From IMG/VR virus record IMGVR_UViG_3300047548_001122, positions 62,001 to 126,000 of that record: 64,000 bases of DNA; one strand, given 5' to 3'. The translations under genes were made by a program, and so were the position numbers. Positions 5,516 through 27,706 of this stretch are shown here, in pieces. The notes below the pieces were generated by a model that ran no database searches, had not been told where the DNA came from, and was given only the letters and a program-made list of their open reading frames with translations. How positions within the stretch are numbered: the first letter of the stretch is position 1; every line of letters starts with the position of its first letter.

Positions 5516-8500
5516 ATGCCTACCTCATTAATACCGATTATCGCTAGAACGAATACCATCGACGAATGGAGAATTCAAACAAATAAATCTGCTTCAGATT
5601 TAAATGATCTTGGATTTTATACTTACGACAAAAATCAGGGTACTTTATTACTCTCAAATACTTCATTGTTGAGTATAACCGCAAATGGTACACCACTTCA
5701 AGTTGCGAATAATGTTCTATTTCAAAGTAGCCTAACTTTAGGTAATACACTTTTCCTTGGTGTACAAAGTTCTGCAACTGGTAATATTATTGCTGGTGGA
5801 ACTGTTTCGGTGAGGGGGCCAGGATCAGCATTATCTGTTTCGAATAACTCTTATGTTGGTGTAGACCTACAAGTTGTAAGTAACATCTATGCAAACAATT
5901 ATACTGCTAATGGAAGTTTAACTGTAGCAAATAATGTTACTGTATCCACAGGCATTTTAAGATTAAATGGCACAGGAAATGTAGCTTACGTAAACAGTGG
6001 TTCTATTTCCGCAAACACGTTGTATGTTACAGATACCAATTCAACAAATGTAAAAACTGCTAACCTTACTGCGGCATTTGCAAGAATTGATGTATTGGAT
6101 GATCTAGCCTTTGCAAGAATAGGTATTCTGGAAAACACAACAGGCAATTCATATTATCTTTCTTCGAATTCTCATACTTCGAACTCTATTGCAACGAGAT
6201 ATATTACAGCAAATATTTCCGGTAATATTGTTAATTTTAGTTCTAATGTATCTTCAATTAATACAGCTACAATTTTAACTGGAAACGTAGTATCACTAAC
6301 AAGTAATCTATCTGGAATAAATGTAGCAACAATCAATACATCAACTACACTAGTTGGAAACGTAGTATCACTGACAAGTAATTTATCTGCAATTAACGTT
6401 GCCACAGTTAATACATCAACCACATTAGTTGGAAATGTAGTATCTTTAACCAGTAATACATCTTCTATTAATGTAGCAACAGTTAATACCGCTTCTATTA
6501 ATGTATTAAGTTCTTATAACTTAACTTCTACACATAGAATAACAGCAAACAACATTATCACAAACAATGTAGAAGTTTCTACTATAAATGTTGCTCATGT
6601 AAATATTTCTTCTAATCTTTGGATCGCAAGTGGTTCTGTTTCTAGAATATATGCACCAACAGAAGAACATGAATCTTTAACGGTTGATGGCAAAACAACT
6701 TTAGAAACAGCATTAGTAACAAATAATTTAACTGTACAAGGAACTTTTACACAATTAGGTGATATTGAATATGAAACGAATGAGATTATATTCAATAAGA
6801 GAACTCCAACAAACGCAGACGTAATCATTAGAAATGAAAGACCTGTTGGAAATGATGCAATCATACAATGGAGTGAATCTGATGACCAATGGGTATTATC
6901 AAAAGGAAACACTTATACTCAACTTTTTGGTATATTAGATACGAGTTTCTTAGATTCTTCAGTTTTAAATGTTAGTTCATCAAATGTTGCTACCCCTTTA
7001 GCTGTCAATATTGCTCATACTACAGCACAGACTGTTGGTAGATATGCAAATTCTTCGTATATACACGCTAATGCTTCATTTAATTGGGCAAATGTTGTAT
7101 CAACTACTGCAAATGCAAATACAGCAAGATTAACTACAGACGTTACAATTGCAGGAAACTATGCTAATAATGCATACATGACTGCTAATTCAGCCCAAGT
7201 GTATGCTAATGCTGCATTTAGAACTCAAAATACCACTGGCGTTTATGCGAATTCTGCTTTCGATGTTGCAAACACTGCTTTAATTGCAGGCGGCACAATT
7301 TCAGGTGGTTATGCGAACGCAGCATTTGCGAGGGCAAATACAGCAAACACAACATCAATAAGCGCATCCTCTTATGCAAATGGTGCGTTTGCGGCCGCTA
7401 ACACTGCTGCAACAGCTGCTGCACTAGCTCAATCTTCTGGCGTTTCTGCTGGACTATATGCTAACGCAGCGTATGAAGCTGCAAATAGTGCTGTTGATAC
7501 TTGGGTTAGAAATGCGGCAAACTCAGCATCCAGTTATGCAAACAGTGCCTTTGCAAATGCTAATAATGCAATATACAAAACCGGACAGACAAGTCAAACT
7601 TTAAGTGGAAGTTTAGAAGTAACTGGAAATGTAAATACGTCAGATATTAAATTTACTCCGGGAACAACTTTATTACAAGGTTCTAAAGTTGTTATTAATT
7701 CTAATCAGAATCAAAACCAAGGTCCTTCTTTATCAGCTACCATAGAAGTAGATAGGGGCATTTCTCCTAATGCCATATTCAGATATAATGAAACTATCGA
7801 TAGATGGGAATACACTCATGCTTTATCTGACCCAGCCGATTTCACAACATTAGGATTTATAAGTGAACGAGCTAATAATATTACTGGTGGTGCAGCGAAT
7901 AGAATTCCTGTTCAAACTTCTGCCAATGTTACATCATTTATTGATGCCCCCGTTACGGCTAATTATTTCTTAAAGTGGACCGGATCAGCATTTACTTGGG
8001 CAGATGTTCCTACAGCAGACTTATCCAATTTAAATGCGACAAATTTAACTTCTGGTATATTACCATTAAGTAGAGTTACTAAACTTAATAACATTGCAGG
8101 AAGCACACCGAATGATGGTACGAAAAGAGTTTACTCGATGCATATCGATGGTGATGCTGCATATGCGACAACCGCAGGATCAGCAACTTCAGCAACTTCA
8201 GCAACAACAGCCGGATCCACCACAAATGTAACTGCCGGCGGATCTGTAACTACAGGAACAATCAATCAGGGTACAACAACAGCATTAACAAACTATGGTG
8301 GAACTGACTTCTATAACAGAGTCAGAATTAGAAATAGTACACAAGCCACAACAACCCAAGATAATAGTAATAGTCCTGCTTCTGGTGCCGCACTTTATGT
8401 TGAGGGTGGTATATATTGTGAAAAAGATATAGTTTGTGATATACTCAGAGGCACTGCAACTGCTGCCTACTACTCCGCTGACGTTGCGGAAAAATATTTG

Positions 8501-8839
8501 CCTGACGTTGAATACCCAACAGGAACAATTCTGATGGTTGGCGGCAAAAAAGAAGTTACAGCGGCTACAAAAGAGAAAAGTTATGTTATAATAGGTGTTG
8601 TATCTGAAAATCCTTCACTCATAATGAATTCGCAACTGGAGGGTGGTGTAATTGTTGGACTTAAAGGACGACTGCCAGTGAGAGTTATTGGTAAATGTAA
8701 GAAGGGTGATCTATTAGAGATGTCGGATATACCAGGTGTAGGTATAGTTTCTGACGGTAATAAATTGCCTTTAAGATTAATTTGTTTAGAAAACAAAAAA
8801 ACTGAAGAAGAAGGAACGGTAGAAGTAGCTATCATGTAA
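5516..8839 (+). CDS. Tail fibre/spike-like protein with C-terminal putative intramolecular chaperone (peptidase G2-like) domain
   Basis: 1107 aa. N-terminal NTIDEWRIQTN motif, Asn/Thr/Val beta-repeats (NVATxNTSTTLVGNVVSLTSN x3), YANxAF coiled-coil repeats, C-terminal ADVAEKY...IIGVVSENP..MN...GLKGRLPV..GDLL. Confidence 0.7.
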   Translation: MPTSLIPIIARTNTIDEWRIQTNKSASDLNDLGFYTYDKNQGTLLLSNTSLLSITANGTPLQVANNVLFQSSLTLGNTLFLGVQSSATGNIIAGGTVSVRGPGSALSVSNNSYVGVDLQVVSNIYANNYTANGSLTVANNVTVSTGILRLNGTGNVAYVNSGSISANTLYVTDTNSTNVKTANLTAAFARIDVLDDLAFARIGILENTTGNSYYLSSNSHTSNSIATRYITANISGNIVNFSSNVSSINTATILTGNVVSLTSNLSGINVATINTSTTLVGNVVSLTSNLSAINVATVNTSTTLVGNVVSLTSNTSSINVATVNTASINVLSSYNLTSTHRITANNIITNNVEVSTINVAHVNISSNLWIASGSVSRIYAPTEEHESLTVDGKTTLETALVTNNLTVQGTFTQLGDIEYETNEIIFNKRTPTNADVIIRNERPVGNDAIIQWSESDDQWVLSKGNTYTQLFGILDTSFLDSSVLNVSSSNVATPLAVNIAHTTAQTVGRYANSSYIHANASFNWANVVSTTANANTARLTTDVTIAGNYANNAYMTANSAQVYANAAFRTQNTTGVYANSAFDVANTALIAGGTISGGYANAAFARANTANTTSISASSYANGAFAAANTAATAAALAQSSGVSAGLYANAAYEAANSAVDTWVRNAANSASSYANSAFANANNAIYKTGQTSQTLSGSLEVTGNVNTSDIKFTPGTTLLQGSKVVINSNQNQNQGPSLSATIEVDRGISPNAIFRYNETIDRWEYTHALSDPADFTTLGFISERANNITGGAANRIPVQTSANVTSFIDAPVTANYFLKWTGSAFTWADVPTADLSNLNATNLTSGILPLSRVTKLNNIAGSTPNDGTKRVYSMHIDGDAAYATTAGSATSATSATTAGSTTNVTAGGSVTTGTINQGTTTALTNYGGTDFYNRVRIRNSTQATTTQDNSNSPASGAALYVEGGIYCEKDIVCDILRGTATAAYYSADVAEKYLPDVEYPTGTILMVGGKKEVTAATKEKSYVIIGVVSENPSLIMNSQLEGGVIVGLKGRLPVRVIGKCKKGDLLEMSDIPGVGIVSDGNKLPLRLICLENKKTEEEGTVEVAIM

Positions 8840-8842
8840 ATT

Positions 8843-9580
8843 ATGATTGGAATTATTGGTTATGGTATGGTTGGACAAGCCGTTGAATACGGCTTTTCCA
8901 AAACTAAAGTTTTTGTTTGTGATCCGAAATATAATCACGTAACAATTAAGGGTCTTTGTTTATTAAATCCAGAGGCCATATTTGTATGTGTGCCTACCCC
9001 TACAGACGATACAAATTATTCATTATTGACTTCAATATTGGACGAAATCGTATTGATGAATTATCAAGGCATTGTTATTGTAAAGTCTACAATATTGCCT
9101 CAATATTTGTCCAAATATGATATAGTGTATAATCCTGAATTTCTATCCAGATCAACTTCAAAAGAAGATTTCGTCAAACCTCCTTTTATATTACTGTCTG
9201 GAAAAAAATCTGAAAAAGTAACAGAACTCTATAAAAAATATTCTATTGTTGATACTAGTAAAATATTTACTACCGATATCAATACTGCATCTTTTATAAA
9301 GTATACCATGAATAGTTTTTATGCGACAAAAGTAACGTTCATGAATACCATGTATGATATTGCTAAAGAGTTAAACGTTGATTATAATGAAGCAATATCA
9401 ATTCTATCTCAACACCCCTGGATGGGTTCTCATCATTTTCAAGTACCTGGACCTGATGGTAAAAGAGGATTTGGAGGTCCTTGTTTACCGAAAGACACAA
9501 AGGTTTTAGCTGAAAAATTTGATAAAGAATTATTAAAGACTGTTTTAAAAATAAACGAACAATATAGAAATATTATATAG
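8843..9580 (+). CDS. UDP-glucose/GDP-mannose dehydrogenase-like protein (short form)
   Basis: GYGMVG Rossmann motif, FVCVPTP, KSTI, YNPEFL, catalytic GFGGPCLPKD. Only 245 aa, so the C-terminal domain is absent. Confidence 0.85.
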   Translation: MIGIIGYGMVGQAVEYGFSKTKVFVCDPKYNHVTIKGLCLLNPEAIFVCVPTPTDDTNYSLLTSILDEIVLMNYQGIVIVKSTILPQYLSKYDIVYNPEFLSRSTSKEDFVKPPFILLSGKKSEKVTELYKKYSIVDTSKIFTTDINTASFIKYTMNSFYATKVTFMNTMYDIAKELNVDYNEAISILSQHPWMGSHHFQVPGPDGKRGFGGPCLPKDTKVLAEKFDKELLKTVLKINEQYRNII

Positions 9581-9617: not shown

Positions 9618-10724
9618 ATGGTTGTAGACATTAACGTAACTAGTATCTGTAATTTGGCTTGTACGTATTGTTCAGAAGGATTTGAATGTGGATTGTCAAC
9701 AGAATTTGAAGAAAATACTTCTTTAACGTTGGATAATGTTGAAGAATTTATGGCAAAAATTTCCGATCCAAAGAAAGATGTTTATTTTTGGGGTGGTGAA
9801 CCTTTTGTTAATTGGGATTTTTGCAGGGGAGTTATAGAGAAATTTAAACACGACCCTGGTTTCTCATTCTTCTTCTATACGAATGGTACATACTTGAAAA
9901 GATATCTAAAAGATTTAGTTAGAATTCATAATGAAATACCAGGTAGATTAAAACTACAAGTTTCGTATGATGGAAAGCCAGTAAATGACATTGCTCGCGT
10001 AACCAAATCTGGTACGCCATCTTCAGCTTTAGTTAAAGCGAATTACATTGCAGCTAAAGAAGCCGGATTAAACATTTCGTTGAAATCAGTTTTAACTTCA
10101 GATAATTTTCATTTGATTTATGAAGCGTTTTTAGATGTAATTGAAATGGACAAAAATTATTTTCCTACACCAGACTTATACAGTCAGTTAACTGAGGAAG
10201 AATTTATGCCCAAGTTAGAGGTATTAAAAGAGGGATTGAAAAAGATAGCAAAACACATTTATGAAAATAAGTTACCACCTGAAAAATTTGGATGGTTTCA
10301 ACAGTCTAGAGCTCTCTGTGCCGCAGGTATTAATTATTTGAGTGTAGATTTGAATGGAGATTTAAGTCCTTGTCACGGGTGCATGTATAAAGAATCACAT
10401 TCACATAAATTAGGAAACATTTTTAAAGTTGCTGATTTGGATGCTTTAATTGAAGAAAAATCTACAATGTATAAAAATGCTTTAAAAAATCAACCATTGG
10501 ATTGTATGAATTGCGACAGTCAATTCTGTATGAAATGTAATGCTGCAACATATGAGAAAAGTGAGAAAGAAACTTATTTGGAAAAGTGGAGCGATCACAC
10601 CGCAAACTGGCAAGTATGTAAAGTTTTTAAAACAAACGAAATTGTGCATCACGCTTTAAGAACTGCTTTGAAGAGTTACAAAAAACCTGTAATTAAAATC
10701 CAAGCAGAACAATGCACAGTTTAA
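9618..10724 (+). CDS. Radical SAM/SPASM protein (peptide-maturase-like)
   Basis: CNLACTYC, FWGGEP, TNG; C-terminal CAAG...PCHGC...CMNCDSQFCMKC Cys cluster; SD GAGGAG upstream. Confidence 0.9.
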   Translation: MVVDINVTSICNLACTYCSEGFECGLSTEFEENTSLTLDNVEEFMAKISDPKKDVYFWGGEPFVNWDFCRGVIEKFKHDPGFSFFFYTNGTYLKRYLKDLVRIHNEIPGRLKLQVSYDGKPVNDIARVTKSGTPSSALVKANYIAAKEAGLNISLKSVLTSDNFHLIYEAFLDVIEMDKNYFPTPDLYSQLTEEEFMPKLEVLKEGLKKIAKHIYENKLPPEKFGWFQQSRALCAAGINYLSVDLNGDLSPCHGCMYKESHSHKLGNIFKVADLDALIEEKSTMYKNALKNQPLDCMNCDSQFCMKCNAATYEKSEKETYLEKWSDHTANWQVCKVFKTNEIVHHALRTALKSYKKPVIKIQAEQCTV

Positions 10725-10733
10725 GGAGAAAAA

Positions 10734-11858
10734 ATGTTTACATTGGAAGTTAGTGTTACGGAAAAATGTAATCTTGGTTGTCCATATTGTTATGTGGCAA
10801 ACAGACCAACATGGATGACAAAAGAAGTTTTCGATCAAGGTATGGAAGACCTCACGAAACTAATGCAAAAATCTGGCGATAAAGATTATCATGTTAGTTT
10901 TTTCGGGGGTGAACCTTTACTTAATTGGGAATTAATTACTCATGCAGTACCGTATTTAAAATCGGATAAAAGATGTAAGGGTATTAATATCATTACTAAC
11001 TTAACGATGATTGATGAAGAGAAGGCCAACTATTTGAAAGAAAATAGTGTTGGTGTTTCTTGGTCGTTTGATGGTATGAGTTCAAATGAAAGTAGACCAC
11101 TTTTACCTTTACTCGAAAATACTAACCCAGAAACCGGCGAATTGTTTGATGGCATTCTTTCAATGTATGAATATAAAAAGGATATCATAAAAGGTTTGAC
11201 AAATGGTTGCAAGGTTATGATATGGCCAGGCAATACAAAAGACATGAAAGAAAATTTTGAATTTTTGCTCGAATGGGGAATAGAACATCCAGATTTCAGT
11301 ATTGTTCGTGATGATGTTTGGACAGCAGATGACATAAGACAGTTTAGATATGAATGTGAAAGATTAGCAGACTTTTGGATAGAACAACTGAAAGCGGGAA
11401 AACCCTGTTCTGTTGGATTTCTTAGACTTGCAATCTTAGACACATTATACGGATTGGTAAAAGGTAAAAGACCATTCGGATGTTTTGCTGGAGCAAATGG
11501 TGGAGTTTTAATGAGTTCTGGTGAATTTTATCCTTGTGCTAGATTTGCATCTAAAAAGATCATGAAGATGGATGAACAATATAACTTTAAATATTATCAA
11601 GACATTTTTAATCCTAAGAATTTCGATAAGTGTGAACCGTGTGATTTGAAACAAGTTTGCAATGCTGGTTGCACTTATTCTCAAATCATGAATGATAACA
11701 AACCATTGGATAGTATTTGTGAATTATTTCACATCTATTATGAACAAGCTATAAGAGTTGTGAATGAATGTAGAGATATTCCAACATTTCAAGATTTAGT
11801 GCTGCATTTTATTGAAAGTGTTGGTGTGGAAAATGAAGGATTGGAATGTAGGAATTAA
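10734..11858 (+). CDS. Radical SAM/SPASM protein (AslB/peptide-maturase-like)
   Basis: CNLGCPYC, FFGGEPLL; SPASM CFAG...YPC...CEPCDLKQVCNAGC...C; SD AAGGAG. Confidence 0.92.
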   Translation: MFTLEVSVTEKCNLGCPYCYVANRPTWMTKEVFDQGMEDLTKLMQKSGDKDYHVSFFGGEPLLNWELITHAVPYLKSDKRCKGINIITNLTMIDEEKANYLKENSVGVSWSFDGMSSNESRPLLPLLENTNPETGELFDGILSMYEYKKDIIKGLTNGCKVMIWPGNTKDMKENFEFLLEWGIEHPDFSIVRDDVWTADDIRQFRYECERLADFWIEQLKAGKPCSVGFLRLAILDTLYGLVKGKRPFGCFAGANGGVLMSSGEFYPCARFASKKIMKMDEQYNFKYYQDIFNPKNFDKCEPCDLKQVCNAGCTYSQIMNDNKPLDSICELFHIYYEQAIRVVNECRDIPTFQDLVLHFIESVGVENEGLECRN

Positions 11859-11859
11859 T

Positions 11860-12189
11860 ATGAAAAAATTAAAAAGTTTATTGTCAATACCTATAAAGGT
11901 AGAAATGCAACCTGTTGAACATGCTTCAAATAGAGTTATAACGGTTGATGAACTATCAAATCAAATAGAAGAGGCTAGAAAAGGTAAAGCTAAAGTTGAT
12001 AGTAAGTATGTTGGATACAATGAAGCTGGCCATTTATTTGATTACAAATTTGATTATGTTAAATTTTTAGATAATATGAGTTTCATAATTAAAGAGGCTA
12101 AAAAAAGACCTAGAGATAACAGATATAAGAGTGAACATAAATTAATGTTGTCGAACGCCGGCAAAGGGCAAGATATACAAAAAGAATAA
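11860..12189 (+). CDS. Hypothetical protein (110 aa, basic) within radical SAM cluster
   Basis: ATG at 11860, one base after the upstream stop, is preferred to the overlapping 11812 start; its stop overlaps the next ATG. Confidence 0.6.
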   Translation: MKKLKSLLSIPIKVEMQPVEHASNRVITVDELSNQIEEARKGKAKVDSKYVGYNEAGHLFDYKFDYVKFLDNMSFIIKEAKKRPRDNRYKSEHKLMLSNAGKGQDIQKE

Positions 12190-13055
12190 TGGCTATAAAA
12201 GATTTTTTTGTTTTTCATGAATCCAATAAACCAATAATTACAAATTCTGGTGTTAATGTTTTATACTTCACAAATAAATGCAACTTAGCCTGCACTTATT
12301 GTTATGAGGATTTGCCTGGAAGACCCCCTCAAATTTTAAGTAAAGAGGATATTGTTCGTATTGTAGACGAAGTTATTTTGAGAGAGGATCCTGAAAAGCA
12401 AACACTATTTGTTTTATTTGGTGGTGAACCCACTCTAGAATGGGAAAATGTTTGTTTTGCTATGGAATATGCCTATAATAAAAAGAAAAACGTACACTTT
12501 AATATGACAACAAATGGTATAAAATACCTAAGTGAAAAATTTATAATTGAGACTAAAAATAACTTTTTCTACAAAAATAGAATGTTGTCTATAGATGTTA
12601 GTTTTGATGGCATCGGCAATAAAGACAGAATTTTCCATAATGGAAAAGAATCAACTTCTTCAATGTTGACTGTTTTTAAGAATTTGTTAGTAAATAACTT
12701 TAGATATAGACTCAGATATACTGTACATAAATATAATGTTAAATGGTGTTATGATGACATACACAAATTAATAAAGACGTTTAAACCTGAAAGATTGATA
12801 ACTTCAGTTGCATGGGACACTCTAGGTGAAGATGATTTAGTTAAGTTACAGGAAGTAAAAGACAAGTTTAGAGATGACTGGATAAATAGAAGAATAGACG
12901 TTCCAGTATGTGATATATTTTGTGACATGTGTAACGGATGCTCGGAGACAAAAGATATCAAAACCTATTTTACCAATGAAGGTAATGTAACAACTCATAA
13001 AAATTTTGAGAGTACGCCCAAATTTAAGGATTTTAAAGAAAAGGTAATGTTATGA
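12189..13055 (+). CDS. Radical SAM protein with short Cys-rich C-terminus
   Basis: CNLACTYC, LFGGEPTL, TTNG, SIDVSFDG; C-terminal CDIFCDMCNGC instead of a full SPASM domain. Confidence 0.88.
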   Translation: MAIKDFFVFHESNKPIITNSGVNVLYFTNKCNLACTYCYEDLPGRPPQILSKEDIVRIVDEVILREDPEKQTLFVLFGGEPTLEWENVCFAMEYAYNKKKNVHFNMTTNGIKYLSEKFIIETKNNFFYKNRMLSIDVSFDGIGNKDRIFHNGKESTSSMLTVFKNLLVNNFRYRLRYTVHKYNVKWCYDDIHKLIKTFKPERLITSVAWDTLGEDDLVKLQEVKDKFRDDWINRRIDVPVCDIFCDMCNGCSETKDIKTYFTNEGNVTTHKNFESTPKFKDFKEKVML

Positions 13056-13441
13056 ATAAAGATGAAATCGTAATTGAAAAATTGAAAAATATTGCTCAGA
13101 TTATCAATGATATCAAAGAGTATGACCAACCTCTTGCTGACTTAATTTGGATGGGTTTCGATACTTCTATGAGTTTAGCTAAATCCGTTTATGAAAATTC
13201 CGAGAAAGATGAACCTATTGATATTTCGGTTTATTTGGAACAAATGTGTGAAGTTCTAGGTATAAATCTGGAACAATTAATTTTAGATATAGTTCAGAAA
13301 AATAACACGAATGAAGTTGCTGAAAAAGAACCTGACACTGAAACTCTAGATTTCATAACTTCTGACATGGATGATTATGAAAAATTTTTGGCCAAAAATT
13401 CAGCGAAAAATAATCTAGATTTCTTATCTAAGGAAATATAA
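13052..13441 (+). CDS. Hypothetical acidic protein (129 aa)
   Basis: ATGA overlap with the upstream gene; Asp/Glu-rich; no recognised motif. Confidence 0.6.
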   Translation: MNKDEIVIEKLKNIAQIINDIKEYDQPLADLIWMGFDTSMSLAKSVYENSEKDEPIDISVYLEQMCEVLGINLEQLILDIVQKNNTNEVAEKEPDTETLDFITSDMDDYEKFLAKNSAKNNLDFLSKEI

Positions 13442-13445
13442 AAAA

Positions 13446-14045
13446 ATGGCTAGTTTAGGACAATTCTTTAATACCGATTCGCCGGTGTATGGCCAGACAA
13501 AACCGGCTGGTGTTCACAGAAAAATATCGAAAACATTTCAAGGAACTTTTGCAACTAATGCCGTTTCTTACGGTCTTTCTGAAGTAAATACCAGTACTAC
13601 TATATCATCATCGTTTTTCAATTCTTTAATTACTAATGCAAAATCTGAAAGAGTTAGAAGGGGAAAGGCAGATGCTAATATAAGTGCCGTTTCATCAGGC
13701 ACAGCTATATCAGCTACCACTCTTAATGATATTAGAAATGCATATAATGTTACAGATGATAGGGTAAATCAAGCGTGGGACGATTGGAGTGGAGCTAATG
13801 CTAATTCTCCAACCGAAACAGCTTTACCAACAAAAACAGTTTGGGGTCCTACAGCAGCTCCATCTAATGTTCCAGGAAGCGTATCTTCAGGTACAAAAAT
13901 TACCGCGAGTGTTATCAATAGTTTAGTGAATTCTTTAAATGCAGCAGGAGCAGTTTGTACCTGTAATTGTAATTACTGTACCTGTAACTGTAACTATTGC
14001 ACTTGTAACTGTAATTATTCCTGTACGTGTAATTGTAATTATTAA
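13446..14045 (+). CDS. Protein with C-terminal Cys-rich (CTCNCNY)x4 repeat; candidate radical SAM substrate or metal-binding protein
   Basis: 199 aa, Ser/Thr/Ala/Asn-rich body with no Cys until the last 29 residues, which hold 12 Cys; SD AAGGA upstream. Confidence 0.8.
   Translation: MASLGQFFNTDSPVYGQTKPAGVHRKISKTFQGTFATNAVSYGLSEVNTSTTISSSFFNSLITNAKSERVRRGKADANISAVSSGTAISATTLNDIRNAYNVTDDRVNQAWDDWSGANANSPTETALPTKTVWGPTAAPSNVPGSVSSGTKITASVINSLVNSLNAAGAVCTCNCNYCTCNCNYCTCNCNYSCTCNCNY
13956..14042 (+). repeat. Coding tandem repeat: 4 x 21-bp unit encoding CTCNCNY (one Ser inserted before unit 4)
   Basis: tgtacctgtaattgtaattac / tgtacctgtaactgtaactat / tgcacttgtaactgtaattat / tcc / tgtacgtgtaattgtaattat. 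Units differ only at synonymous positions. Confidence 0.95.
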
Positions 14046-14047
14046 AA

Positions 14048-14518
14048 ATGTTATTTGATTTAAATCACTTGGAAGAAACTGAAATGTCTTACATTAGACA
14101 CTTCAACCATGGTATGATATTAGGTATGTGGTTGTTTTTTTGTTTTTGCGCTTCTCTTGTTTATTGTTTTTTTCCAATTAAATTCTTACAAGATTTTATA
14201 AGTGAAAGAATAAAAACAATGTATCATGGATTAATGTTGAGATGGTTCGAAGATGATAATTTTAATCCACTCAAACCAAAAAAAGATGCAATAAGAGAAA
14301 AAGTCTATAAAAAAGAATATATTGAAAATATACAAAAAGGATTAGTTAAACCATTTGGTAATTTCAGAACATCTTATGAACTGTTAGTTACTTCTTTAGC
14401 GAGTGTAATACATTCTACTATACCTCAGATATTAGTTCATGTTGCAGCTATGAATGTGGTAAGGTTGTATTTTAGTATTAAAATTGTGGAGAAATCATAT
14501 GAAGCAAAACAAAGTTGA
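14048..14518 (+). CDS. Hypothetical membrane-associated protein (possibly DUF6356-like)
   Basis: HLEETEMSYIRHF...hydrophobic segment...FFP, plus a second similar segment ending IHSTIP. Family call is from memory of the motif only. Confidence 0.5.
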   Translation: MLFDLNHLEETEMSYIRHFNHGMILGMWLFFCFCASLVYCFFPIKFLQDFISERIKTMYHGLMLRWFEDDNFNPLKPKKDAIREKVYKKEYIENIQKGLVKPFGNFRTSYELLVTSLASVIHSTIPQILVHVAAMNVVRLYFSIKIVEKSYEAKQS

Positions 14519-14903
14519 AATTGAAGGTGTAGATGCAAACACTTACGCAGGAAAAGCTATTCAAGCGTGTAAGTTAAAAGCTAGAGGTATATTTGGAGAC
14601 GAACTTTTAACATTTAAATTGTTGGATTTTGTGAGTTTTTTCTTATTAAATAATGAATTGTCATCCAAAGGATATACTATTACGGAAAATAACAGAGAAG
14701 AAGTTTATATTAAAATTATAGAAACTGGCGACATTCAATTGATTAATGATTTGGAAAAATACATTTCTCTTAGAGATTCTTTAAAAGAATTGGAAAAAAA
14801 GAAAGAAGAATATTATAATATTGTGGAAAAGTTGTCTAGTTTACAAGATTTCAATGATGAAGTCAGTATAAATGAAATAGTAGAGTCGTATTTAAGGAGA
14901 TAA
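14499..14903 (+). CDS. Hypothetical helical protein (134 aa)
   Basis: In-frame ATG at 14499 preceded by GGAG is preferred to 14484; charged helical C-terminus. Confidence 0.6.
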   Translation: MKQNKVEIEGVDANTYAGKAIQACKLKARGIFGDELLTFKLLDFVSFFLLNNELSSKGYTITENNREEVYIKIIETGDIQLINDLEKYISLRDSLKELEKKKEEYYNIVEKLSSLQDFNDEVSINEIVESYLRR

Positions 14904-14905
14904 AC

Positions 14906-15892
14906 TTGTTAATACTTTTAAATGGACCTAGAAGTGTACATTTAAGATCCATATCTAGAGCTATTATAGATCAACAAAAAAATTGGAGTTTTAAAGATTA
15001 TACCGTTAAATATAAAAATAACGGTTTTATTGTTTTGGATTCCAACCAAAACAACGTCTATTGTAATAATCCGGAGTTGGGAAACTTAAACCACGACATT
15101 TTTATAAGTTGTTTTACTCAAGAAGAGTTTGATGAGAAATCATTATTGATCGATGAGATAAACGATTTTAATAACAAAATAGATGAAGATATAAAGAAAA
15201 ACCATTTTATAGATTCTTGGCCAGTTACAGATTTTTCCTTTTTATTCGATCACGATTTTAATTTCGAACAAGATGAAACCTATGAAAAAATATTAGAAAC
15301 TTATAGAAACAGTTCAGATACGGATGATATTTGGACAGGAAGATTTTCCATTTCTTTTATAGAAAAACTAAAATCTGATATAGGATCAGAAAATTTAAAA
15401 ATCATAAACTTTATAAGAAATCCAAGTTCTTGTGCATTTACGAACCATTTGGATGAAAATTGTAAAATCGAACATGCAAACATATCAATTTTAAATATGT
15501 TCCTTGTCTCAAAATTACCCGAAACAATTAATGTGAAATATGAAGAATTTTTGAATGATAAAAAGTTTTCTTTGGACGGTTTGGAAATACATTTACCTGA
15601 ATTGATTGTGAATCATAATGGTTTAATTAGTGAGTATGAATTTTCAAAATATGATTCCGATTTAATAAATGATGAAATCATTAATAAACTGAATGATGTT
15701 TATTCCAATTTTAATTTAGTGGAAGTTATGAAAGATGGGTTAAGTGTAGACAATACCTCAGAAATTTACAATGAATTTTTCACGAATTTACAACAAAGAA
15801 TAAAAGAAGATATAAAACAAAGTATACCAGAAAACTTTTTTGTTGAATTGAATTATTCACCCCTATCACTAGAACAAATTATATCGAAATAA
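14906..15892 (+). CDS. Hypothetical protein with P-loop/sulfotransferase-like features
   Basis: N-terminal ILLNGPRS strand-loop, KIINFIRNP and VKYEEF resemble the sulfotransferase RNP/RDP and YEDL motifs; TTG start. Confidence 0.45.
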   Translation: MLILLNGPRSVHLRSISRAIIDQQKNWSFKDYTVKYKNNGFIVLDSNQNNVYCNNPELGNLNHDIFISCFTQEEFDEKSLLIDEINDFNNKIDEDIKKNHFIDSWPVTDFSFLFDHDFNFEQDETYEKILETYRNSSDTDDIWTGRFSISFIEKLKSDIGSENLKIINFIRNPSSCAFTNHLDENCKIEHANISILNMFLVSKLPETINVKYEEFLNDKKFSLDGLEIHLPELIVNHNGLISEYEFSKYDSDLINDEIINKLNDVYSNFNLVEVMKDGLSVDNTSEIYNEFFTNLQQRIKEDIKQSIPENFFVELNYSPLSLEQIISK

Positions 15893-15898
15893 AATTTT

Positions 15899-16777
15899 GT
15901 GTTTTTATTGAACTTGAGGAAGTATGATTTAGTTATTACCACATCATACAATTTTAAATTTGGTATTTGTGGTCATTTATTTGAAATGATAGAATATTAT
16001 TGGGCAATAAAAAATTGGACAAATCTAAATCCATGCATATTATTATCCGATGGAACAACTTTAGAAGAGTTTAATAAAGCTCTAGAAAACAAATATGATG
16101 ATTTGGTGATTGAAAATGTAATATATCATCCTTTCCCCAAAGTATTAATAACAAAAAATCTATTAATAGTTGACGGTTCTTCTCGATTTGATAGAACCGA
16201 AATATATTCGGACAACTTTTTCTTACTACGTTGTCACGAAAATGAATACGATTTTTACTCCAAAAATAAATCAAATTGTTACCTGTTTCAAGATTTTGAA
16301 ATCTATGAAGATATACCGGACAAAATAACAGTAATAGATTATAAGAAAAAAATATTATACAATAAATTTAAAAAAATTGAAGGCGCAGTTGATGATGCCG
16401 CAATGTTTTATTTGACTGACGTTAGTAGATTCATGTCCGAAGATGATGTTAAACACGTTATACAAAAATACCAATTTCCAGATAATGTAATTTTTACCAA
16501 TAAAACAGAACTGTATAAATCAATTAAAACTTATAAAGTTCCCGTTGAGAATATGTGGAATAAATTTTCAAAATATGTTTATACGAAATTGCCTGGAAAA
16601 AGAGATTGTTCAAGTAGATTCATTCTGGAATGTATGCATTATGGAAAAGAAGTTATCTACGACATAGATTACTTTGACAAATCTTTAGAAGTTAGAAAAA
16701 AAGATGGTGTCACCAACACTTCTTTAGGAAAAGGCGATCTTTTGGTCGAATATCTAAATGAACGAATTAAGCGTTAA
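15899..16777 (+). CDS. Hypothetical protein, possibly degenerate GT-B glycosyltransferase
   Basis: 292 aa, GTG start; C-terminal SSRFILECMHYGKEVI resembles the GT-B ExxxxGxxV donor-binding region. Confidence 0.4.
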   Translation: MFLLNLRKYDLVITTSYNFKFGICGHLFEMIEYYWAIKNWTNLNPCILLSDGTTLEEFNKALENKYDDLVIENVIYHPFPKVLITKNLLIVDGSSRFDRTEIYSDNFFLLRCHENEYDFYSKNKSNCYLFQDFEIYEDIPDKITVIDYKKKILYNKFKKIEGAVDDAAMFYLTDVSRFMSEDDVKHVIQKYQFPDNVIFTNKTELYKSIKTYKVPVENMWNKFSKYVYTKLPGKRDCSSRFILECMHYGKEVIYDIDYFDKSLEVRKKDGVTNTSLGKGDLLVEYLNERIKR

Positions 16778-17750
16778 AAAAATTAACATAGATTATGATA
16801 GGTCTATAAACAATAGAGCTAAATTGGATACAGGTAAACTATGTAATTATAAATGCGAATTCTGTTATTATAAAAATCAACTAAGTGAGAGAGATGAACT
16901 AGATAAAATTTATCAAAGAGTGGATTATTTGTTAAGTTATGGAATAACACAAATTGATTTGAGTGGTGGTGAAAGTAGTGTAGAACCTAATTGGTTTAAA
17001 ATATTAGAATACTGTCAGAATAAGTTCGAAAGAATAAGTTGTTTAAGTCACGGAGGAAAATTTAGTGATAAAGAATTTATTCAAAAGAGTTATGAATTAG
17101 GACTGAGAGAGATATTATTCAGTTTACACTGTACTGAAGAATCGATACACGATAAAATAGTTGGTAAAAAAGGTGCTTTCAAAAATTTATTGAAAGCGAT
17201 AGAAAATTGTCATGATCTTGGTATTGAAGTTAGAATTAATACAACCATATACCACGAAAACTATGATAAGATAAACACCGATTTTATCAAAAGTTTAAAT
17301 CCTTCACAAATAAATTTTATAGCTTTGAATTATTGGCAAGATAATAGTGATTTTTCTACGATAGATTATGAAAAAGTTTGTTCATATGTTTCAAATTATA
17401 TCAAAAAGTTGCATGATAAAATAGAAGTTAATGCCAGATATTTTCCGTATTGCTTCATGCCAGACGAAGAACGTTTTATTAAAAATCACTATCATCATAT
17501 CTATGATATGAAAGATTGGAATAAAGCTGTATATAATGGTCAGTTAGATACCTCTATTACTTATACACACAAACAGAAAGTGGAACAATCATTTGATGAA
17601 GCTGAAAGGTTGCGTCTTTATACTTGTTTCAAAAGTAACGAATGTTTGAATTGCAAATATTTTTATGTCTGTGATGGAATAGAAAAACAATTGAAAGGTA
17701 AAATTCAACCTAAACCCATATTAGGTGAAAAGATAAAGGTCGTATGGTAA
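16758..17750 (+). CDS. Radical SAM protein (MoaA/NifB/PqqE-like) with C-terminal Cys cluster
   Basis: CNYKCEFC, DLSGGE, FSLH; C-terminal CLNCKYFYVCDG. Confidence 0.9.
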   Translation: MNELSVKKINIDYDRSINNRAKLDTGKLCNYKCEFCYYKNQLSERDELDKIYQRVDYLLSYGITQIDLSGGESSVEPNWFKILEYCQNKFERISCLSHGGKFSDKEFIQKSYELGLREILFSLHCTEESIHDKIVGKKGAFKNLLKAIENCHDLGIEVRINTTIYHENYDKINTDFIKSLNPSQINFIALNYWQDNSDFSTIDYEKVCSYVSNYIKKLHDKIEVNARYFPYCFMPDEERFIKNHYHHIYDMKDWNKAVYNGQLDTSITYTHKQKVEQSFDEAERLRLYTCFKSNECLNCKYFYVCDGIEKQLKGKIQPKPILGEKIKVVW

Positions 17751-18415
17751 ATCCTGATTTATCGATACTTATATTGACACACAAAAGACCTTTGTTATTT
17801 GAAAGGTGTTTAACTTCGGTTATGAATCAATATTCCGAAAATATAGAGGTTTTGGTTAATAACGATAGTTCAGATATAAAAGAAATCTTTTCGGAAAATG
17901 TTAAATATTTTTATGAGAAATTTGATAGTATTTCCGAAATATACGAATTTTTGTTGAAGATGTCGAAGGGAAAATACATTTACTTTTTAGAAGATGACGA
18001 TTACTTAACGGAAGATTTTTTAAATCAGAAGTTGGATTCGGATATAATTGCTGGGAATTATTGTCCTACATATAAACCTAATAAAATTTTAGATTTAATG
18101 AATATGTTCCAAGATTCTTTATTTTTCGATAGAGTAGATTTTATAAAAAAACTAAATTTGGAACATTTACAATTAGGACAGTTTATATTTAAAAAAGATG
18201 TTATAGAAGATTTCGTTTTTGAAAAAGATAATAATGTACATAACGATATCAAACTTGTATATCATGCTTCACTGAAATGTAAAACCTTTAAAACAACCAG
18301 TAAGTTTTTTTATTATCAGACTATAGACGGTAACGACAATATATCTTTTCCCAATACTATAAAAAATATATCGGTTACCGCATCTATGGATTTTTTAAAG
18401 AACTATGAAATATAG
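17744..18415 (+). CDS. Glycosyltransferase family 2 (GT-A)
   Basis: LSILILTHKRP, EVLVNNDSS, GKYIYFLEDDD (DxD). Confidence 0.85.
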   Translation: MVNPDLSILILTHKRPLLFERCLTSVMNQYSENIEVLVNNDSSDIKEIFSENVKYFYEKFDSISEIYEFLLKMSKGKYIYFLEDDDYLTEDFLNQKLDSDIIAGNYCPTYKPNKILDLMNMFQDSLFFDRVDFIKKLNLEHLQLGQFIFKKDVIEDFVFEKDNNVHNDIKLVYHASLKCKTFKTTSKFFYYQTIDGNDNISFPNTIKNISVTASMDFLKNYEI

Positions 18416-19316
18416 CATACAACATCATAAAGATCAAGACCCAGATCATATTAACGTACATTGGGATAGCTTAACTATTTGTCAGTTAAAGTGTTCTTAT
18501 TGTTATGCTAGAAATGAGTATGGAAAAGAATGGGGTAAAATATCCAGTAAAACAATAATTGATGCTGTTTTGGATGCTCTGAATCGTAGTAGTTTAAATT
18601 TCAATTTAGGTTTGTTGGGTGGTGAACCAACTTTAGGTCCCCATTATTATTACATACTTGATTCGATTAGTAAAATGGAAAAGTTTAATTGGGTATATGT
18701 TGTAACTAATGGTGAAAAAGACTTGACAACTCATCCACATTATGATAGACTGGCTTTTCTTTTTAGTTATCATCCGGCAGATTGTACTGATCGAGATAGG
18801 TTTTTAAACAATATTCGACATATGTTGGATAGAGGTTATAAGTGTAAAGTGAATGTCATGCTCCACCACGATAAAAACTTATGGCCTAAGATTAAAGAGA
18901 TGTTTGAAATTTTGGAGAAAATTCCAAACCTTAAAGTTCATCCACATTTCCTTTACGGTAACAGTATCACCAAGTTGTTCAATTATAGAAAAGATTTTTG
19001 GGAATATTTTTCATTTTTGGAAAACTATGAAAAAGAATTGAAATATGATGATGACCTTTTTAATGATTATATCATATTCAGAGATAAATTAACGAACTTT
19101 AAAGGTTGGAGTTGTTATAATAACAATTATGAAATTGATGTTAGAGGTAACGTAGTTAAATTTTGTATGCCAAAAACAGATAATGTTAACCTCGTTCGTG
19201 ATAGGGATTTCTTTAAAAATATATCCAAAACTGTTCCTATGATTTGTCCACATAAAGCTTGCAATTGCGATGGACTCTTGAAACAATTAAAAGTAAAAAA
19301 TGAGCCAGATAGTTGA
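18405..19316 (+). CDS. Radical SAM protein with twitch-like C-terminus
   Basis: CQLKCSYC, LLGGEPT, VTNG; C-terminal CYN...KFC...CPHKACNCDG. Confidence 0.88.
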   Translation: MKYSIQHHKDQDPDHINVHWDSLTICQLKCSYCYARNEYGKEWGKISSKTIIDAVLDALNRSSLNFNLGLLGGEPTLGPHYYYILDSISKMEKFNWVYVVTNGEKDLTTHPHYDRLAFLFSYHPADCTDRDRFLNNIRHMLDRGYKCKVNVMLHHDKNLWPKIKEMFEILEKIPNLKVHPHFLYGNSITKLFNYRKDFWEYFSFLENYEKELKYDDDLFNDYIIFRDKLTNFKGWSCYNNNYEIDVRGNVVKFCMPKTDNVNLVRDRDFFKNISKTVPMICPHKACNCDGLLKQLKVKNEPDS

Positions 19317-20058
19317 ATGGGAAATTACACTTAAATGTAATTACAAATGCACTTACTGTACGAATTTGGATCCAAGTATACGACCTGAACTCGATGAAAG
19401 TAAAATAAGAGAATTTATTGCGAACTTAGGACAAAAGTATCCTGGTGTGGAAGTATTTATTTTTGGTGGTGAACCTTTTGTTCACCCTAAGATAGAATTC
19501 ATTATAAAAACTTTTAATGAACACAAAATACCTTTTGTAATTCAAACCAACTTCAGTAATTATAGTCGAGAAAAGATTCGAAAAATAACTGATCCTTTTA
19601 AGATCAATATTAGTGTTCATCCCACCGAAACTTCTATAGATGATATTGTGGAAGGACTCAAGAGCACAAACGTCAATATAAAAACGATAGATGTTATGTA
19701 TACTGGTCAAGATGCAATAAAATATTATTTTGCAGTTAAAAAAGCTATCGAACATGACAATTTATTTTTAACTCCAATTACAGATTTTGGAGATGGTTAT
19801 AGTGACAATTTACTTCTACAATACCTTGCATTGAAGAAAAAAACGGTATATAAAAATATAATTAAATTTGAAAATGTAAAAAGATTGGATCGTCAACGTA
19901 GTGAAATTTGGGCAGATCCTAATTTTAAAACTTTTGGAAAGCCCTGTTTATACAAAGATAAATATTTTTTATATTCTCCCAATTTAGAATTGTATAATTG
20001 TTGTTATAGAATAAAAGTGGACAAATTGTGTCCGAAAACAAAATGTTTTTTAATGTGA
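19300..20058 (+). CDS. Radical SAM protein (compact, twitch-like)
   Basis: WEITLKCNYKCTYC, IFGGEPF, QTN; C-terminal PC...NCC...CPKTKC. Confidence 0.88.
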   Translation: MSQIVEWEITLKCNYKCTYCTNLDPSIRPELDESKIREFIANLGQKYPGVEVFIFGGEPFVHPKIEFIIKTFNEHKIPFVIQTNFSNYSREKIRKITDPFKINISVHPTETSIDDIVEGLKSTNVNIKTIDVMYTGQDAIKYYFAVKKAIEHDNLFLTPITDFGDGYSDNLLLQYLALKKKTVYKNIIKFENVKRLDRQRSEIWADPNFKTFGKPCLYKDKYFLYSPNLELYNCCYRIKVDKLCPKTKCFLM

Positions 20059-20064
20059 TGTTAT

Positions 20065-20880
20065 ATGAGATATCTTTTAGCTGGCGCTTTCAGTAAATCA
20101 ATACCGATAATAAAATTTTTAACACATAAGTTGGTAGACAACACCAAACTTGTGGTTTATGATGGTGTGAATAAATGTAAATGGAATGGCGGAAGAATTA
20201 ATCGGGATGTTTATTATAGTGATGCGTTAATAGACTATTACTATAGTAAAGATATCAGTATTGCTCTTACGATGAGTAATCATAAAATTGATTTATCGGA
20301 TGAAACAGGAAATCACCTGCTAGAAAAATTTCACAAAGAAGGTAATGCCTTAATTATTGTTAATGATGATTTAAGGCAATACGTCAGAAAAAACTTTCCC
20401 AAATACGATTTAATTTATAGTATTACTGGTATGGGTCTGTTAAACATTCCTTTACAAGATAGTGATATTGCTTGGTATAAAGACTTGGAAAGTAAGTATG
20501 ATTGGATTGTTCCGAGATTTGAACATGTATTTGATTCTAGAGCTTCGGAGTTAGATAGAAACAAATGGGAAGTTATGTTAAATGACACTTGCGTTTGGGG
20601 TTGTAAACATTGGGATGAACATTTCAAAGCAATCGCAGATGAAAATACCGCTGGTCGTCCATATAGTAAACAGGTAGAAGAATGTTGGTTGCCAAAATTT
20701 GATTTTAATAAAGATAGTAAATATCCTCCAATGGATATCAAACCAGAAAACATGCGTAAACTTTTGGACGTTGGTGTAAGAAGTTTTAAAATTACCGGTA
20801 GAGAAATGACAGATGATGAATATTATGGTGAATTGACGAGATTCATTAATCGAAGTTTAGAGGCATTAAAAAATGGATGA
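20065..20880 (+). CDS. Peptidase U32-like (Fe-S TIM-barrel) protein
   Basis: VMLNDTCVWGC Cys motif, later C, and C-terminal GVRSFKITGR matching the U32 (S/F)LKIEGR signature. Confidence 0.6.
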   Translation: MRYLLAGAFSKSIPIIKFLTHKLVDNTKLVVYDGVNKCKWNGGRINRDVYYSDALIDYYYSKDISIALTMSNHKIDLSDETGNHLLEKFHKEGNALIIVNDDLRQYVRKNFPKYDLIYSITGMGLLNIPLQDSDIAWYKDLESKYDWIVPRFEHVFDSRASELDRNKWEVMLNDTCVWGCKHWDEHFKAIADENTAGRPYSKQVEECWLPKFDFNKDSKYPPMDIKPENMRKLLDVGVRSFKITGREMTDDEYYGELTRFINRSLEALKNG

Positions 20881-21943: not shown

Positions 21944-22560
21944 AATGCGCTATAACAGGACATACTAGAGGATTAGGCAAATCTCTCTATAATCACTTTA
22001 AAGAAAAAGGATGGGAAGTAATTGGATTTAGTACAACCAATGGATATTTTTTACCTGATGCTTTAGAAAAAGTAATTGAAGAGTCGAATGGTTGCGATTT
22101 GTTCATCAACAATACATTTGCACAGGGACATCAAATCGATCTGTTACATGCTTTGAAATATAAGGTTAAAAATATGGTTGTTTGTGGATCGATTGCTAGA
22201 ACTGAACCATTAAACGAAATACTGTATGGTGATTATGTAGACATTAAAACCGAGTTAGCAAAGTCTTGTAATATTTTAAGTATCAGTAATGACAGTAGAT
22301 TAATGAATATATTACATTTGGATTTGGGATTTTTAGAAGGTAGTGTTGAAAACATTTTAGATCCTACAGAATTTATAAGTGATTATACAATAGGTTTTAA
22401 TGATGTAATCTCCGCAATTGAATTATGGTTGTTGCATCCTAAGATTAAACAAATTGAATTTTCCTGGAAATTAACTCCTTTTTTGGAAACTAGACTTAAA
22501 CGAGCCACAAATAATCCAGATTCATTAAATAAACTTTTATCTGACATAAATGAAGCGTGA
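21940..22560 (+). CDS. Short-chain dehydrogenase/reductase-like protein
   Basis: AITGHTRGLG (TGxxxGxG), DLFINN, YxxxK (YVDIK). Confidence 0.7.
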   Translation: MKCAITGHTRGLGKSLYNHFKEKGWEVIGFSTTNGYFLPDALEKVIEESNGCDLFINNTFAQGHQIDLLHALKYKVKNMVVCGSIARTEPLNEILYGDYVDIKTELAKSCNILSISNDSRLMNILHLDLGFLEGSVENILDPTEFISDYTIGFNDVISAIELWLLHPKIKQIEFSWKLTPFLETRLKRATNNPDSLNKLLSDINEA

Positions 22561-27673: not shown

Positions 27674-27678
27674 ACAAA

Positions 27679-27685
27679 ATAAATA
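27679..27685 (+). promoter_or_regulatory. T4-type late promoter-like motif ATAAATA before erpA
   Basis: Lies in the 33-bp divergent intergenic gap, upstream of SD AGGAG. Confidence 0.4.
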
Positions 27686-27706
27686 TATTAGATAGGAGAT
27701 TTTAAG

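Follow-up and report, generated by a model that had tools for sequence, protein, structure and literature searches.

The closest described precedent for the locus examined here is the archaeal CrpA/CrpB/CrpC system of Methanococcus voltae (PMC13692751, 2026), one of the Crp-type Cys-rich protein systems (TIGR04463 enzymes). In this system a SPASM radical-SAM (rSAM) enzyme is encoded next to a protein of more than 100 amino acids, rather than a short peptide, and this protein has a conserved N-terminal part followed by C-terminal cysteine repeats with a C-X-X-Q/D motif on which ranthionine thioethers have been demonstrated. There is a single enzyme, which carries an RRE, the repeat is 17 residues long, there are no fibre or self-cleaving modules, and the function is linked to the use of iron-sulfur minerals.

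Other rSAM systems share particular features. In the SCIFF/CteB and freyrasin PapA/PapB systems, repeated Cys-X(n)-Asp/Asn/Thr motifs are cross-linked by one auxiliary-cluster-dependent mechanism, although the substrates are short leader-core peptides of about 45-50 amino acids and CteB has an N-terminal RRE. In the QhpC/QhpD system, a SPASM rSAM enzyme installs several Cys-to-Asp/Glu thioethers in a polypeptide that remains as a structural subunit of a larger assembly, the gamma subunit of quinohemoprotein amine dehydrogenase. This is a single periplasmic enzyme subunit without repeats, and it is not viral. The bacterial His-Xaa-Ser system (HxsA-D), whose product is unknown, pairs several rSAM maturases (HxsB, HxsC) with a target protein that contains H-x-S rather than Cys repeats.

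Two phage fibre systems are also relevant. In endosialidase and the T5 L-shaped fibre, a C-terminal intramolecular chaperone (Peptidase_S74) trimerizes the preceding segment and then cuts itself off, but no known S74 fibre has a Cys-heptad segment or rSAM partners. In the T4 gp37 needle, a short repeat with alternating HxH residues lies at the distal end of a trimeric fibre and binds iron spontaneously, with no dedicated enzymes encoded alongside.

The locus described here is found in a large T4-like phage, within a window of 64,000 nucleotides (positions 62,001 to 126,000 of IMG/VR record IMGVR_UViG_3300047548_001122). It encodes three rSAM enzymes without an RRE next to a small fibre-like protein that ends in four CTCNCNY units. 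The same pairing recurs in dozens of unrelated phage contigs, and therefore the enzymes most likely cross-link the cysteine tail of a virion protein. No characterised viral example was found in our literature searches.

Architecture of the locus

The genes from 9618 to 17750 are encoded on the + strand. The first gene, rSAM1 (9618-10724; 368 amino acids), matches the Pfam families Radical_SAM, Fer4_12 and SPASM. It carries a CX3CX2C motif at residues 11/15/18 and seven conserved cysteines at positions 234, 252, 296, 299, 304, 307 and 334, which constitute a full SPASM domain. Its best solved relative is CteB (5wgg), wherein the alignment begins at CteB residue 101, and no N-terminal RRE is present. 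The second gene, rSAM2 (10734-11858; 374 amino acids), is the most conserved member of the trio and matches Radical_SAM. Its SPASM domain was missed by Pfam, but cysteines 12/16/19 and 250, 268, 300, 303, 309, 313 and 329 are invariant and include the motif CX2CX5CX3C. CteB is matched with E=1.4e-15 over residues 7-328. The third gene, rSAM3 (12189-13055; 288 amino acids), is a shorter Radical_SAM protein with cysteines at 31/35/38 and only one auxiliary motif, CX3CX2CX2C at 241/245/248/251, and thus it lacks the seven-cysteine SPASM arrangement. Its match to CteB has E=3.4e-12. Across the 56-62 homologues audited for the enzymes, the CX3CX2C motif is conserved in 98-100%.

All three enzymes score far below every curated NCBIfam cutoff. 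The best family for each is the ranthipeptide maturase PapB, at 77, 133 and 81 bits for rSAM1, rSAM2 and rSAM3, respectively, against a cutoff of 340. QhpD is also among the top hits, but at 55-83 bits against a cutoff of 453. There is a weak HxsC hit for rSAM3 and a weak HxsB hit for rSAM2, again below the cutoffs.

The repeat protein (13446-14045; 199 amino acids) has exactly 12 cysteines, all of which are located in residues 171-199. These are arranged as three CTCNCNY units, one Ser, and a final CTCNCNY unit followed immediately by the stop codon. The DNA of the four units (13956-14042) varies in five of seven codons, and every change is synonymous. There are 643 database homologues of this protein and 304 clusters at 50% identity, and the motif is nearly invariant among them, which excludes chance as its origin. 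The N-terminal domain (approximately 13542-13955) is modelled by AF2 with pLDDT above 90 for residues 40-170, whereas the repeats are below 50 and yield no confident structure. A profile HMM of this domain is found in 87 of 107 repeat proteins.

The original prediction described two full rSAM/SPASM genes, a third rSAM gene and a repeat protein whose only cysteines form four C-terminal units, and these observations are confirmed. However, the interval holds four small open reading frames (ORFs) rather than the three noted originally. One ORF (11860-12189) has homologues in 49 loci, always between rSAM2 and rSAM3, and lacks any Pfam, PHROG or NCBIfam family. A small acidic ORF directly upstream of the repeat gene (13052-13441) has homologues in 55 loci at the same position, with no family hit and no PqqD/RRE signal. 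A DUF6356 membrane protein (14048-14518; E=3.9e-11) is probably not part of the core cassette, as its homologues are found in only 10 loci that are all close relatives. Finally, a helical protein (14499-14903; phrog_25260) is the most widely conserved non-enzyme partner, with homologues in 73 of 120 loci, including distant ones. Its AF2 model is an all-helical hairpin (pLDDT 90.5) with no PDB match, so it is not an RRE.

The window also holds four more rSAM genes downstream, at 16758, 18405, 19300 and 20873. The first of these, rSAM4 (16758-17750), is HxsC-like, although its NCBIfam score of 77 bits is below the cutoff. Together with two unknown ORFs (14906-15892 and 15899-16777, the latter phrog_24441), it forms a group of frequently linked accessory genes (14906-17750) whose membership in the cassette is uncertain. 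The family of the ORF at 15899 occurs in 22 of 34 representative loci, and rSAM4 lies near the cassette in many loci.

Association between the repeat protein and the rSAM enzymes

The original prediction proposed that the enzymes act on the repeat protein, a reading that would be refuted if homologues of this protein usually occurred without these rSAMs. The opposite holds. Of 26 dereplicated loci with at least 5 kb on both sides, 25 have a homologue of rSAM1, rSAM2 or rSAM3 within 7 kb, and 21 have all three. Gene order differs among these loci, wherein the arrangement is 1-2-3-repeat, 2-3-1-repeat, or the repeat gene first with the enzymes 2-4 kb downstream, and enzyme identity falls to 22-26%. 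Independent gene calls on contigs of 332-364 kb show the same cassette. A few heptad genes nevertheless have no rSAM nearby, namely one locus with full flanks and two with shorter flanks.

The association is also evident in the reverse direction. Of 21 viral loci whose rSAM2 homologue is at least 38% identical, 19 have a heptad gene within 10 kb, and a 20th has a broken remnant. Among 50,697 GenBank phage records, the heptad protein and the rSAM2 homologue occur in the same 15 Campylobacter Firehammervirus records, although four unannotated human-faecal 'Bacteriophage sp.' records also gave weak rSAM2 hits of 25-31% identity. In the Campylobacter phages, and in the contig carrying loci L036/L146, the genes lie tens of kb apart.

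Features of the repeat and its structural context

There are 893 units in 119 proteins examined, with 4 to 28 units per protein. Position 4 is N/D/Q in 95% of the units, position 6 is N/D in 93%, and Tyr at position 7 is 94% conserved. The heptad holds two overlapping C-x-x-N/D/Q motifs, from C1 to X4 and from C3 to X6, which matches the C-X-X-Q/D motif of CrpA (PMC13692751). Intriguingly, the same N-terminal domain (motif NxE[RQ]xRRG) accompanies variant Cys-rich tails next to more distant rSAM homologues, and there can be up to four tandem substrate paralogues per locus. This is reminiscent of the logic of a leader. However, no RRE domain or discrete PqqD-like protein was found in the enzymes or their small neighbours, which leaves recognition of the substrate unexplained.

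Peptidase_S74 (PF13884) follows the repeats, in full or as a 12-amino-acid stub, in 99 of the 120 best homologues, and a Hint domain follows in others. The domain is complete in 43 of these 120, one homologue scores 34.8 bits against a cutoff of 22, and the Ser...Lys (SDxxxK) motif is present. The protein in the window has no Pfam hit and ends at the last heptad, where cleavage would occur. A distant homologue, the gene 3-9 product of Campylobacter phage IBB_35, was detected in virions by published ESI-MS/MS proteomics. Unfortunately, this homologue shares only the repeat region with the protein in the window, and its detection rests on 2.6% sequence coverage. These observations, along with the well-folded and conserved N-terminal domain, support the original proposal that the substrate is a full-length, virion-like protein rather than a leader-core peptide.

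Possible functions of the cassette

Several alternatives to thioether formation on a fibre protein were considered, each of which we regard as unlikely. The substrate might be the same but the chemistry different, such as Tyr-based cyclophane C-C links, Cys-to-formylglycine oxidation as in anSME, epimerization, or a mixture with one reaction per enzyme. The near-invariant Tyr, the full-length matches of rSAM2 to the cyclophane-forming YhhB family and anSME, and the presence of three different enzymes are consistent with this possibility. However, the best matches for all three enzymes are the thioether formers CteB and PapB, and three invariant cysteines per unit with N/D/Q at +3 fit the ranthionine pattern of CrpA. 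Slightly less likely is a metal-binding cysteine ladder, wherein the C-x-C-x-C faces of three chains coordinate Fe or Zn along the axis of a trimeric fibre, as the HxH motifs do in T4 gp37, and the neighbouring rSAMs serve other pathways. The S74 chaperone implies a trimer just upstream of the cleavage site, the alternating cysteines would place three thiols on one face of a strand, and the four further rSAMs and many sugar-modifying genes of the island make other enzyme substrates conceivable. This does not explain why a trio of peptide-maturase-like SPASM enzymes follows the heptad gene through rearrangements, divergence to 25% identity and different habitats, nor does it explain the conserved N/D/Q at +3.

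A true diffusible RiPP, with the N-terminal domain as an oversized leader and a released 28-residue core that acts on the host or on competitors, is more doubtful still. Although the layout of a conserved N-domain with a variable Cys-rich core, the multiple precursor paralogues and the maturase-like enzymes could be viewed in this way, no protease or exporter is among the families shared across the 34 representative loci. Furthermore, the core is followed by S74 or Hint modules, the N-domain is a well-folded domain of about 130 residues, and a homologue was found in virions. The least likely possibility is an Fe-S scaffold or carrier that supplies clusters to the rSAM enzymes of the phage. The window has seven rSAM genes, and marine T4-like genomes with up to 12 rSAM genes also carry Fe-S assembly genes (PMC5332604). 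However, self-cleaving fibre modules make no sense for a carrier, the number of units ranges from 4 to 28, a homologue was detected in virions, and the protein has no similarity to the IscU, NfuA or ATC families.

We favour, with a probability of roughly 0.6 and in the absence of biochemical or mass spectrometry data for any member of the family, a phage cassette for RiPP-like post-translational maturation of a structural, fibre-type protein. The N-terminal domain is inferred to be both the virion attachment part and the handle that the enzymes recognise. Inside the infected cell, the two SPASM enzymes and the third rSAM enzyme are proposed to act on the unstructured tail, where the most likely product is a ladder of small thioether rings, each joining a cysteine sulfur to a carbon of the Asn/Asp/Gln three residues downstream. 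Such links are redox-stable and can be made in the reducing cytoplasm, where disulfides cannot form. In most relatives, the S74 chaperone or Hint domain directly after the last unit would cut itself off, whereas the protein in the window simply ends at that point. The modified tail would then be the exposed C-terminal tip of a short fibre, whose trimeric form and place in the virion are inferred.

Genomic context

The window is part of a 214-kb viral contig, IMGVR_UViG_3300047548_001122, that belongs to a low-GC, T4-like myovirus. Homologues of the neck proteins, tail sheath stabiliser, large terminase, sheath and tube are located at 54.9-63.2 kb. The region is flanked by ORFs of 1107-2584 aa, without a Pfam hit where this was examined, that are taken here to be fibre-like. 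Among these are three giant ORFs (1482, 2464 and 2584 aa) at 28605-48889, and the one searched (28605-33053) has no Pfam hit. Intriguingly, the second and third are each preceded by a 108-aa ORF (33077-33403 and 40812-41138), which suggests a repeated module composed of a fibre and a small partner. No cultured phage is similar at the DNA level, as megablast searches with both the region and the structural module against 50,697 phage records gave nothing.

The genes of interest are found at the start of a 19-kb, especially AT-rich island at about 9-28 kb. There are four further radical-SAM genes in this island (16758-17750, 18405-19316, 19300-20058 and 20873-21943), giving seven in the window in all, and they are interleaved with a GT2 glycosyltransferase gene (17744-18415) and unknown ORFs. 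The same run is seen on 332-364 kb contigs (loci L202 and L204). A block of sugar and secondary-metabolism genes is located at 22550-27736, which includes a transketolase-like TPP protein, two NAD epimerase/dehydratases, a tryptophan-halogenase-family protein (24318-25583, E=5e-65), a PIG-L deacetylase and, on the minus strand, a polysaccharide deacetylase. A flavin-halogenase-like gene is unusual in a phage. Promoter, terminator and T4 late-promoter scans were uninformative. The T4 late-promoter consensus TATAAATA occurs only twice in 64 kb, compared to about 13 occurrences expected from shuffles. Either late promoters differ in this lineage or the motif is avoided.

The enzymes and the repeat protein

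The features described in the original prediction were confirmed, except that the interval carries four small ORFs rather than the three that had been claimed. Both rSAM1 (9618-10724) and rSAM2 (10734-11858) carry a CX3CX2C motif plus seven conserved C-terminal cysteines, which is a complete SPASM domain. In contrast, rSAM3 (12189-13055) carries CX3CX2C plus a single CX3CX2CX2C motif. The 199-aa repeat protein (13446-14045) has 12 cysteines, all of which are located in four CTCNCNY units at residues 171-199. The DNA sequences of these four units differ in five of seven codons, and only synonymously.

The repeat protein belongs to a sizeable and almost purely viral family. A word-indexed search identified 643 homologues, and an exhaustive profile search identified 304 clusters at 50% identity among 1.84 billion representatives. 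Only three loci were found in 185,579 bacterial and archaeal species genomes, and all of them are MAG contigs, which does not support a bacterial origin or a prophage distribution. In 893 units from 119 distinct proteins, the repeated unit is C-[T>I,V,S,L]-C-[N>D>Q]-C-[N>>A,D]-[Y>>H,F], wherein 0 or 1 residue separates adjacent units and there are 4 to 28 units per protein. We considered whether N-Y-C or N-Y-S might represent an N-glycosylation sequon, but this reading was abandoned because Ala or Gly spacers are equally common.

Upstream of the repeats is a domain of about 130 residues (the N-domain) that carries the motif NxE[RQ]xRRG, and an HMM finds this domain in 87 of 107 repeat proteins. 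AlphaFold2 models the N-domain with pLDDT above 90 as three helices and two strands, whereas the repeats score below 50. Unfortunately, the repeat protein has no sequence relative in the PDB, and the confident N-domain model has no fold match in the PDB or BFVD. As a result, no role could be named for this domain on the basis of structural similarity.

Self-cleaving modules downstream of the repeats

Among the 120 best homologues, 43 continue with a full Peptidase_S74 domain, which is the intramolecular chaperone of endosialidases and tail fibres, wherein the SDxxxK Ser-Lys motif starts right after the last Tyr. Another 56 keep only a 12-residue stub of this domain, and 21 end at the repeat, as does the window's protein. 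The stub (SDExxKxxxEYM) retains the Ser and Lys residues, and is found, for example, in the fetched loci L010 (9938-12535), L011 (9489-11555), L046, L047 and L057. Some loci mix stub and full-length paralogues in tandem, and L011 has the order stub, full, stub. Perhaps these proteins form heterotrimers in which one chain supplies the chaperone, or the stub might be a minimal self-cleavage tag.

In some other homologues, a Hint/intein-type domain (starting CFLAGT/S) begins directly after the heptads. These are found in L070 (3-1385), L072 (9158-10765), L086 (599-1777) and L092 (644-2242). The Pfam families Hint, PT-HINT and Intein_splicing score above their cutoffs in L070, whereas L086 gives a weaker match. 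Hint cleavage proceeds through a thioester, which could ligate the C-terminus of the repeat to another molecule. Thus, two unrelated self-cleaving modules are located at the same position. Based on what is established for S74 fibres, we infer that the heptad segment is the mature C-terminal end of a trimeric fibre-type protein.

In cultured phages, the motif is found only in the Campylobacter Firehammerviruses, where its representatives are CP220 CPT_0180, CPt10_1891, F379_160 and IBB_35 gene 3-9. This link was revealed only by the longer Campylobacter homologue; tblastn searches with the window's protein and with a central family member gave nothing. The motif was previously noted in these phages only as an intragenic 21-bp repeat (PMC2853527). 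The IBB_35 product was detected in purified virions at 60,318 Da, albeit with 2.6% coverage (PMC3322345 Table S2). In the Firehammerviruses (loci L022, L023, L121, L122 and L144, and the GenBank records CP220, CPt10, CP21, F379 and IBB_35), the heptad protein is about 540 aa with the repeats in the middle, and it lacks the N-domain. Two records (CP21 and vB_CjeM_WX1) annotate this protein as a 'putative N-acetylneuraminate pyruvate lyase', but no Pfam family supports that annotation.

Association between repeat genes and radical-SAM genes

The original prediction held that the proposed maturation pathway would be contradicted if homologues of the repeat protein usually occur without these enzymes. 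To examine this possibility, 120 loci around heptad genes were fetched from viral, genomic and metagenomic collections, and their ORFs were searched with the window's proteins. Dereplication at 80% identity gave 66 locus clusters, of which 26 have at least 5 kb on both sides. Of these 26, 25 have a homologue of rSAM1, 2 or 3 within 7 kb, and 21 have all three. Only one locus (L035) has none. Notably, the gene order is not fixed, and can be 1-2-3-substrate, 2-3-1-substrate, or substrate first with the enzymes located 2-4 kb downstream (L041, L075, L089 and L104). There can be up to four tandem substrate paralogues (L010), and enzyme identities drop to 22-26%. Across 34 representative loci, the only families shared widely are the repeat protein (33), rSAMs (31), the family of the unknown ORF that begins at 15899 (22) and the helical protein encoded at 14499-14903 (21). 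Independent gene calls with precomputed Pfam assignments on the 332-364 kb contigs show the same cassette.

The association was also assessed in the reverse direction by using a profile of rSAM2 homologues to retrieve viral loci. Of the 21 loci with at least 38% identity, 19 carry a heptad gene within 10 kb. One of the two exceptions (L127) has the full enzyme cassette but carries a broken substrate gene (12638-13087), wherein the N-domain and the S74 domain survive in different frames and the repeats are deleted. This may be a natural loss or an assembly collapse of the repeat. The other exception (L137) has no heptad gene. In GenBank phages, the rSAM2 homologue and the heptad protein occur in the same 15 Campylobacter Firehammervirus records, although the two genes are unlinked there. 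An rSAM1-like gene is located 3-4 kb downstream of the heptad gene in these phages, but the rSAM2-like gene is tens of kb to more than 100 kb away. Four unannotated human-faecal phage records also gave weak rSAM2 hits of 25-31% identity.

Weaker rSAM2 relatives (22-37% identity) are often located next to proteins with the same N-domain but other Cys-rich tails. The N-domain HMM also hits proteins whose C-termini are not heptads, including CTCNVD-type units, a CVCNTDC variant with an S74 stub, and Trp/Cys-rich tails ending WNCKCNP (L145 12397-12894, L147 12296-12823, L154 12640-13128, and L160/L164/L166/L167/L179 at ~6400-7300). All are located near rSAM2-like genes, which fits a constant recognition domain with a variable core. 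In addition, other extremely Cys-rich repeat proteins with up to 69-78 Cys lie next to more distant phage rSAM/SPASM homologues with 22-27% identity to rSAM2 (L149 13884-16853, L177 8412-9440, L190/L193/L194/L200/L201 at ~8334-9497, L170 4595-5344, L189 8716-9813 and L158 5544-5900). Their repeats are of C-x-x-x or C-x-x type. By eye, some carry an ExxRR-type motif in the N-terminal part that resembles the N-domain of the heptad proteins, but this was not confirmed by the HMM. A wider class of phage rSAM and Cys-repeat protein pairs seems to exist.

Possible maturation of a fibre-type protein

Among solved structures, all three enzymes are closest to CteB, the thioether-forming SCIFF maturase. 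They align from CteB residue ~100, and so they lack its N-terminal RRE. Among NCBIfam families they are closest to the PapB ranthipeptide maturase, but they score far below the curated cutoffs of the best-scoring families. They are therefore regarded as members of the SPASM class and, on these scores, of no named family. A weak wHTH-type NCBIfam hit for the ORF at 14499 initially suggested a discrete RRE. However, this assignment was rejected because the structural model is an all-helical hairpin with no match. The two other small ORF families give no PqqD hit, and thus no RRE-like partner was found.

Each heptad contains two overlapping C-x-x-[N/D/Q] motifs. A 2026 study showed that the SPASM enzyme CrpC installs ranthionine thioethers on CrpA, which is a Cys-repeat protein with a C-X-X-Q/D motif and a conserved N-terminal part needed for engagement (PMC13692751). 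Our preferred explanation, to which we assign a probability of roughly 0.6, is that the trio of enzymes installs thioether rings on the heptad tail of a structural fibre protein, wherein the N-domain acts as a built-in recognition element. A more expansive possibility, which we consider only tentatively, is that many large aquatic T4-like phages and the Campylobacter Firehammerviruses build a virion fibre whose exposed C-terminal tip is a ladder of such rings, installed in the cytoplasm by a dedicated trio of radical-SAM enzymes that recognise a folded 'leader' domain. This would be the first RiPP-type maturation of a viral structural protein.

Other explanations are considered unlikely, but they are not all equally weak. 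Perhaps the enzymes carry out other radical chemistry on the same tail, such as formation of a Tyr cyclophane, formylglycine production or epimerisation. Nearly as plausible is a metal-binding Cys ladder whose neighbouring enzymes are unrelated to it, although the genomic coupling described above counts against this reading. Less likely still is a released RiPP, because no protease or exporter is among the widely shared families and the fibre modules count against it. The possibility that the protein serves as an Fe-S carrier is regarded as the most remote.

Implications for phage radical-SAM gene clusters

Pairs of rSAM/SPASM enzymes and Cys-repeat substrates are already known, and there is now one experimental precedent for protein-sized substrates. 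The phage systems differ by their viral structural context, the 7-residue unit, the presence of three RRE-less enzymes per substrate, the fusion of the substrate to self-cleaving fibre modules, and the breadth of the family across aquatic T4-like phages and Campylobacter phages. Literature searches for the motif and for phage rSAM or thioether fibre systems found no description. If the preferred explanation is right, the heptad tail, with its short units present in 4 to 28 copies, and its three compact enzymes would be an attractive system for enzymology and for protein stapling.

Radical-SAM gene clusters in phages have been noted since 2010 without an assigned function, and earlier papers only remarked on their puzzling abundance. 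There are 11-12 such genes in Campylobacter CP220 and CPt10, and up to 12 in marine T4-like genomes (PMC2853527, PMC5332604). Our findings provide a concrete hypothesis for at least three of these genes and name the substrate, and, if the more expansive possibility is right, would give a function to these long-unexplained clusters. If the hypothesis is right, RiPP-type cross-linking extends from small secreted peptides to virus particle proteins. It would also show how a phage can make redox-stable covalent braces in the reducing cytoplasm.
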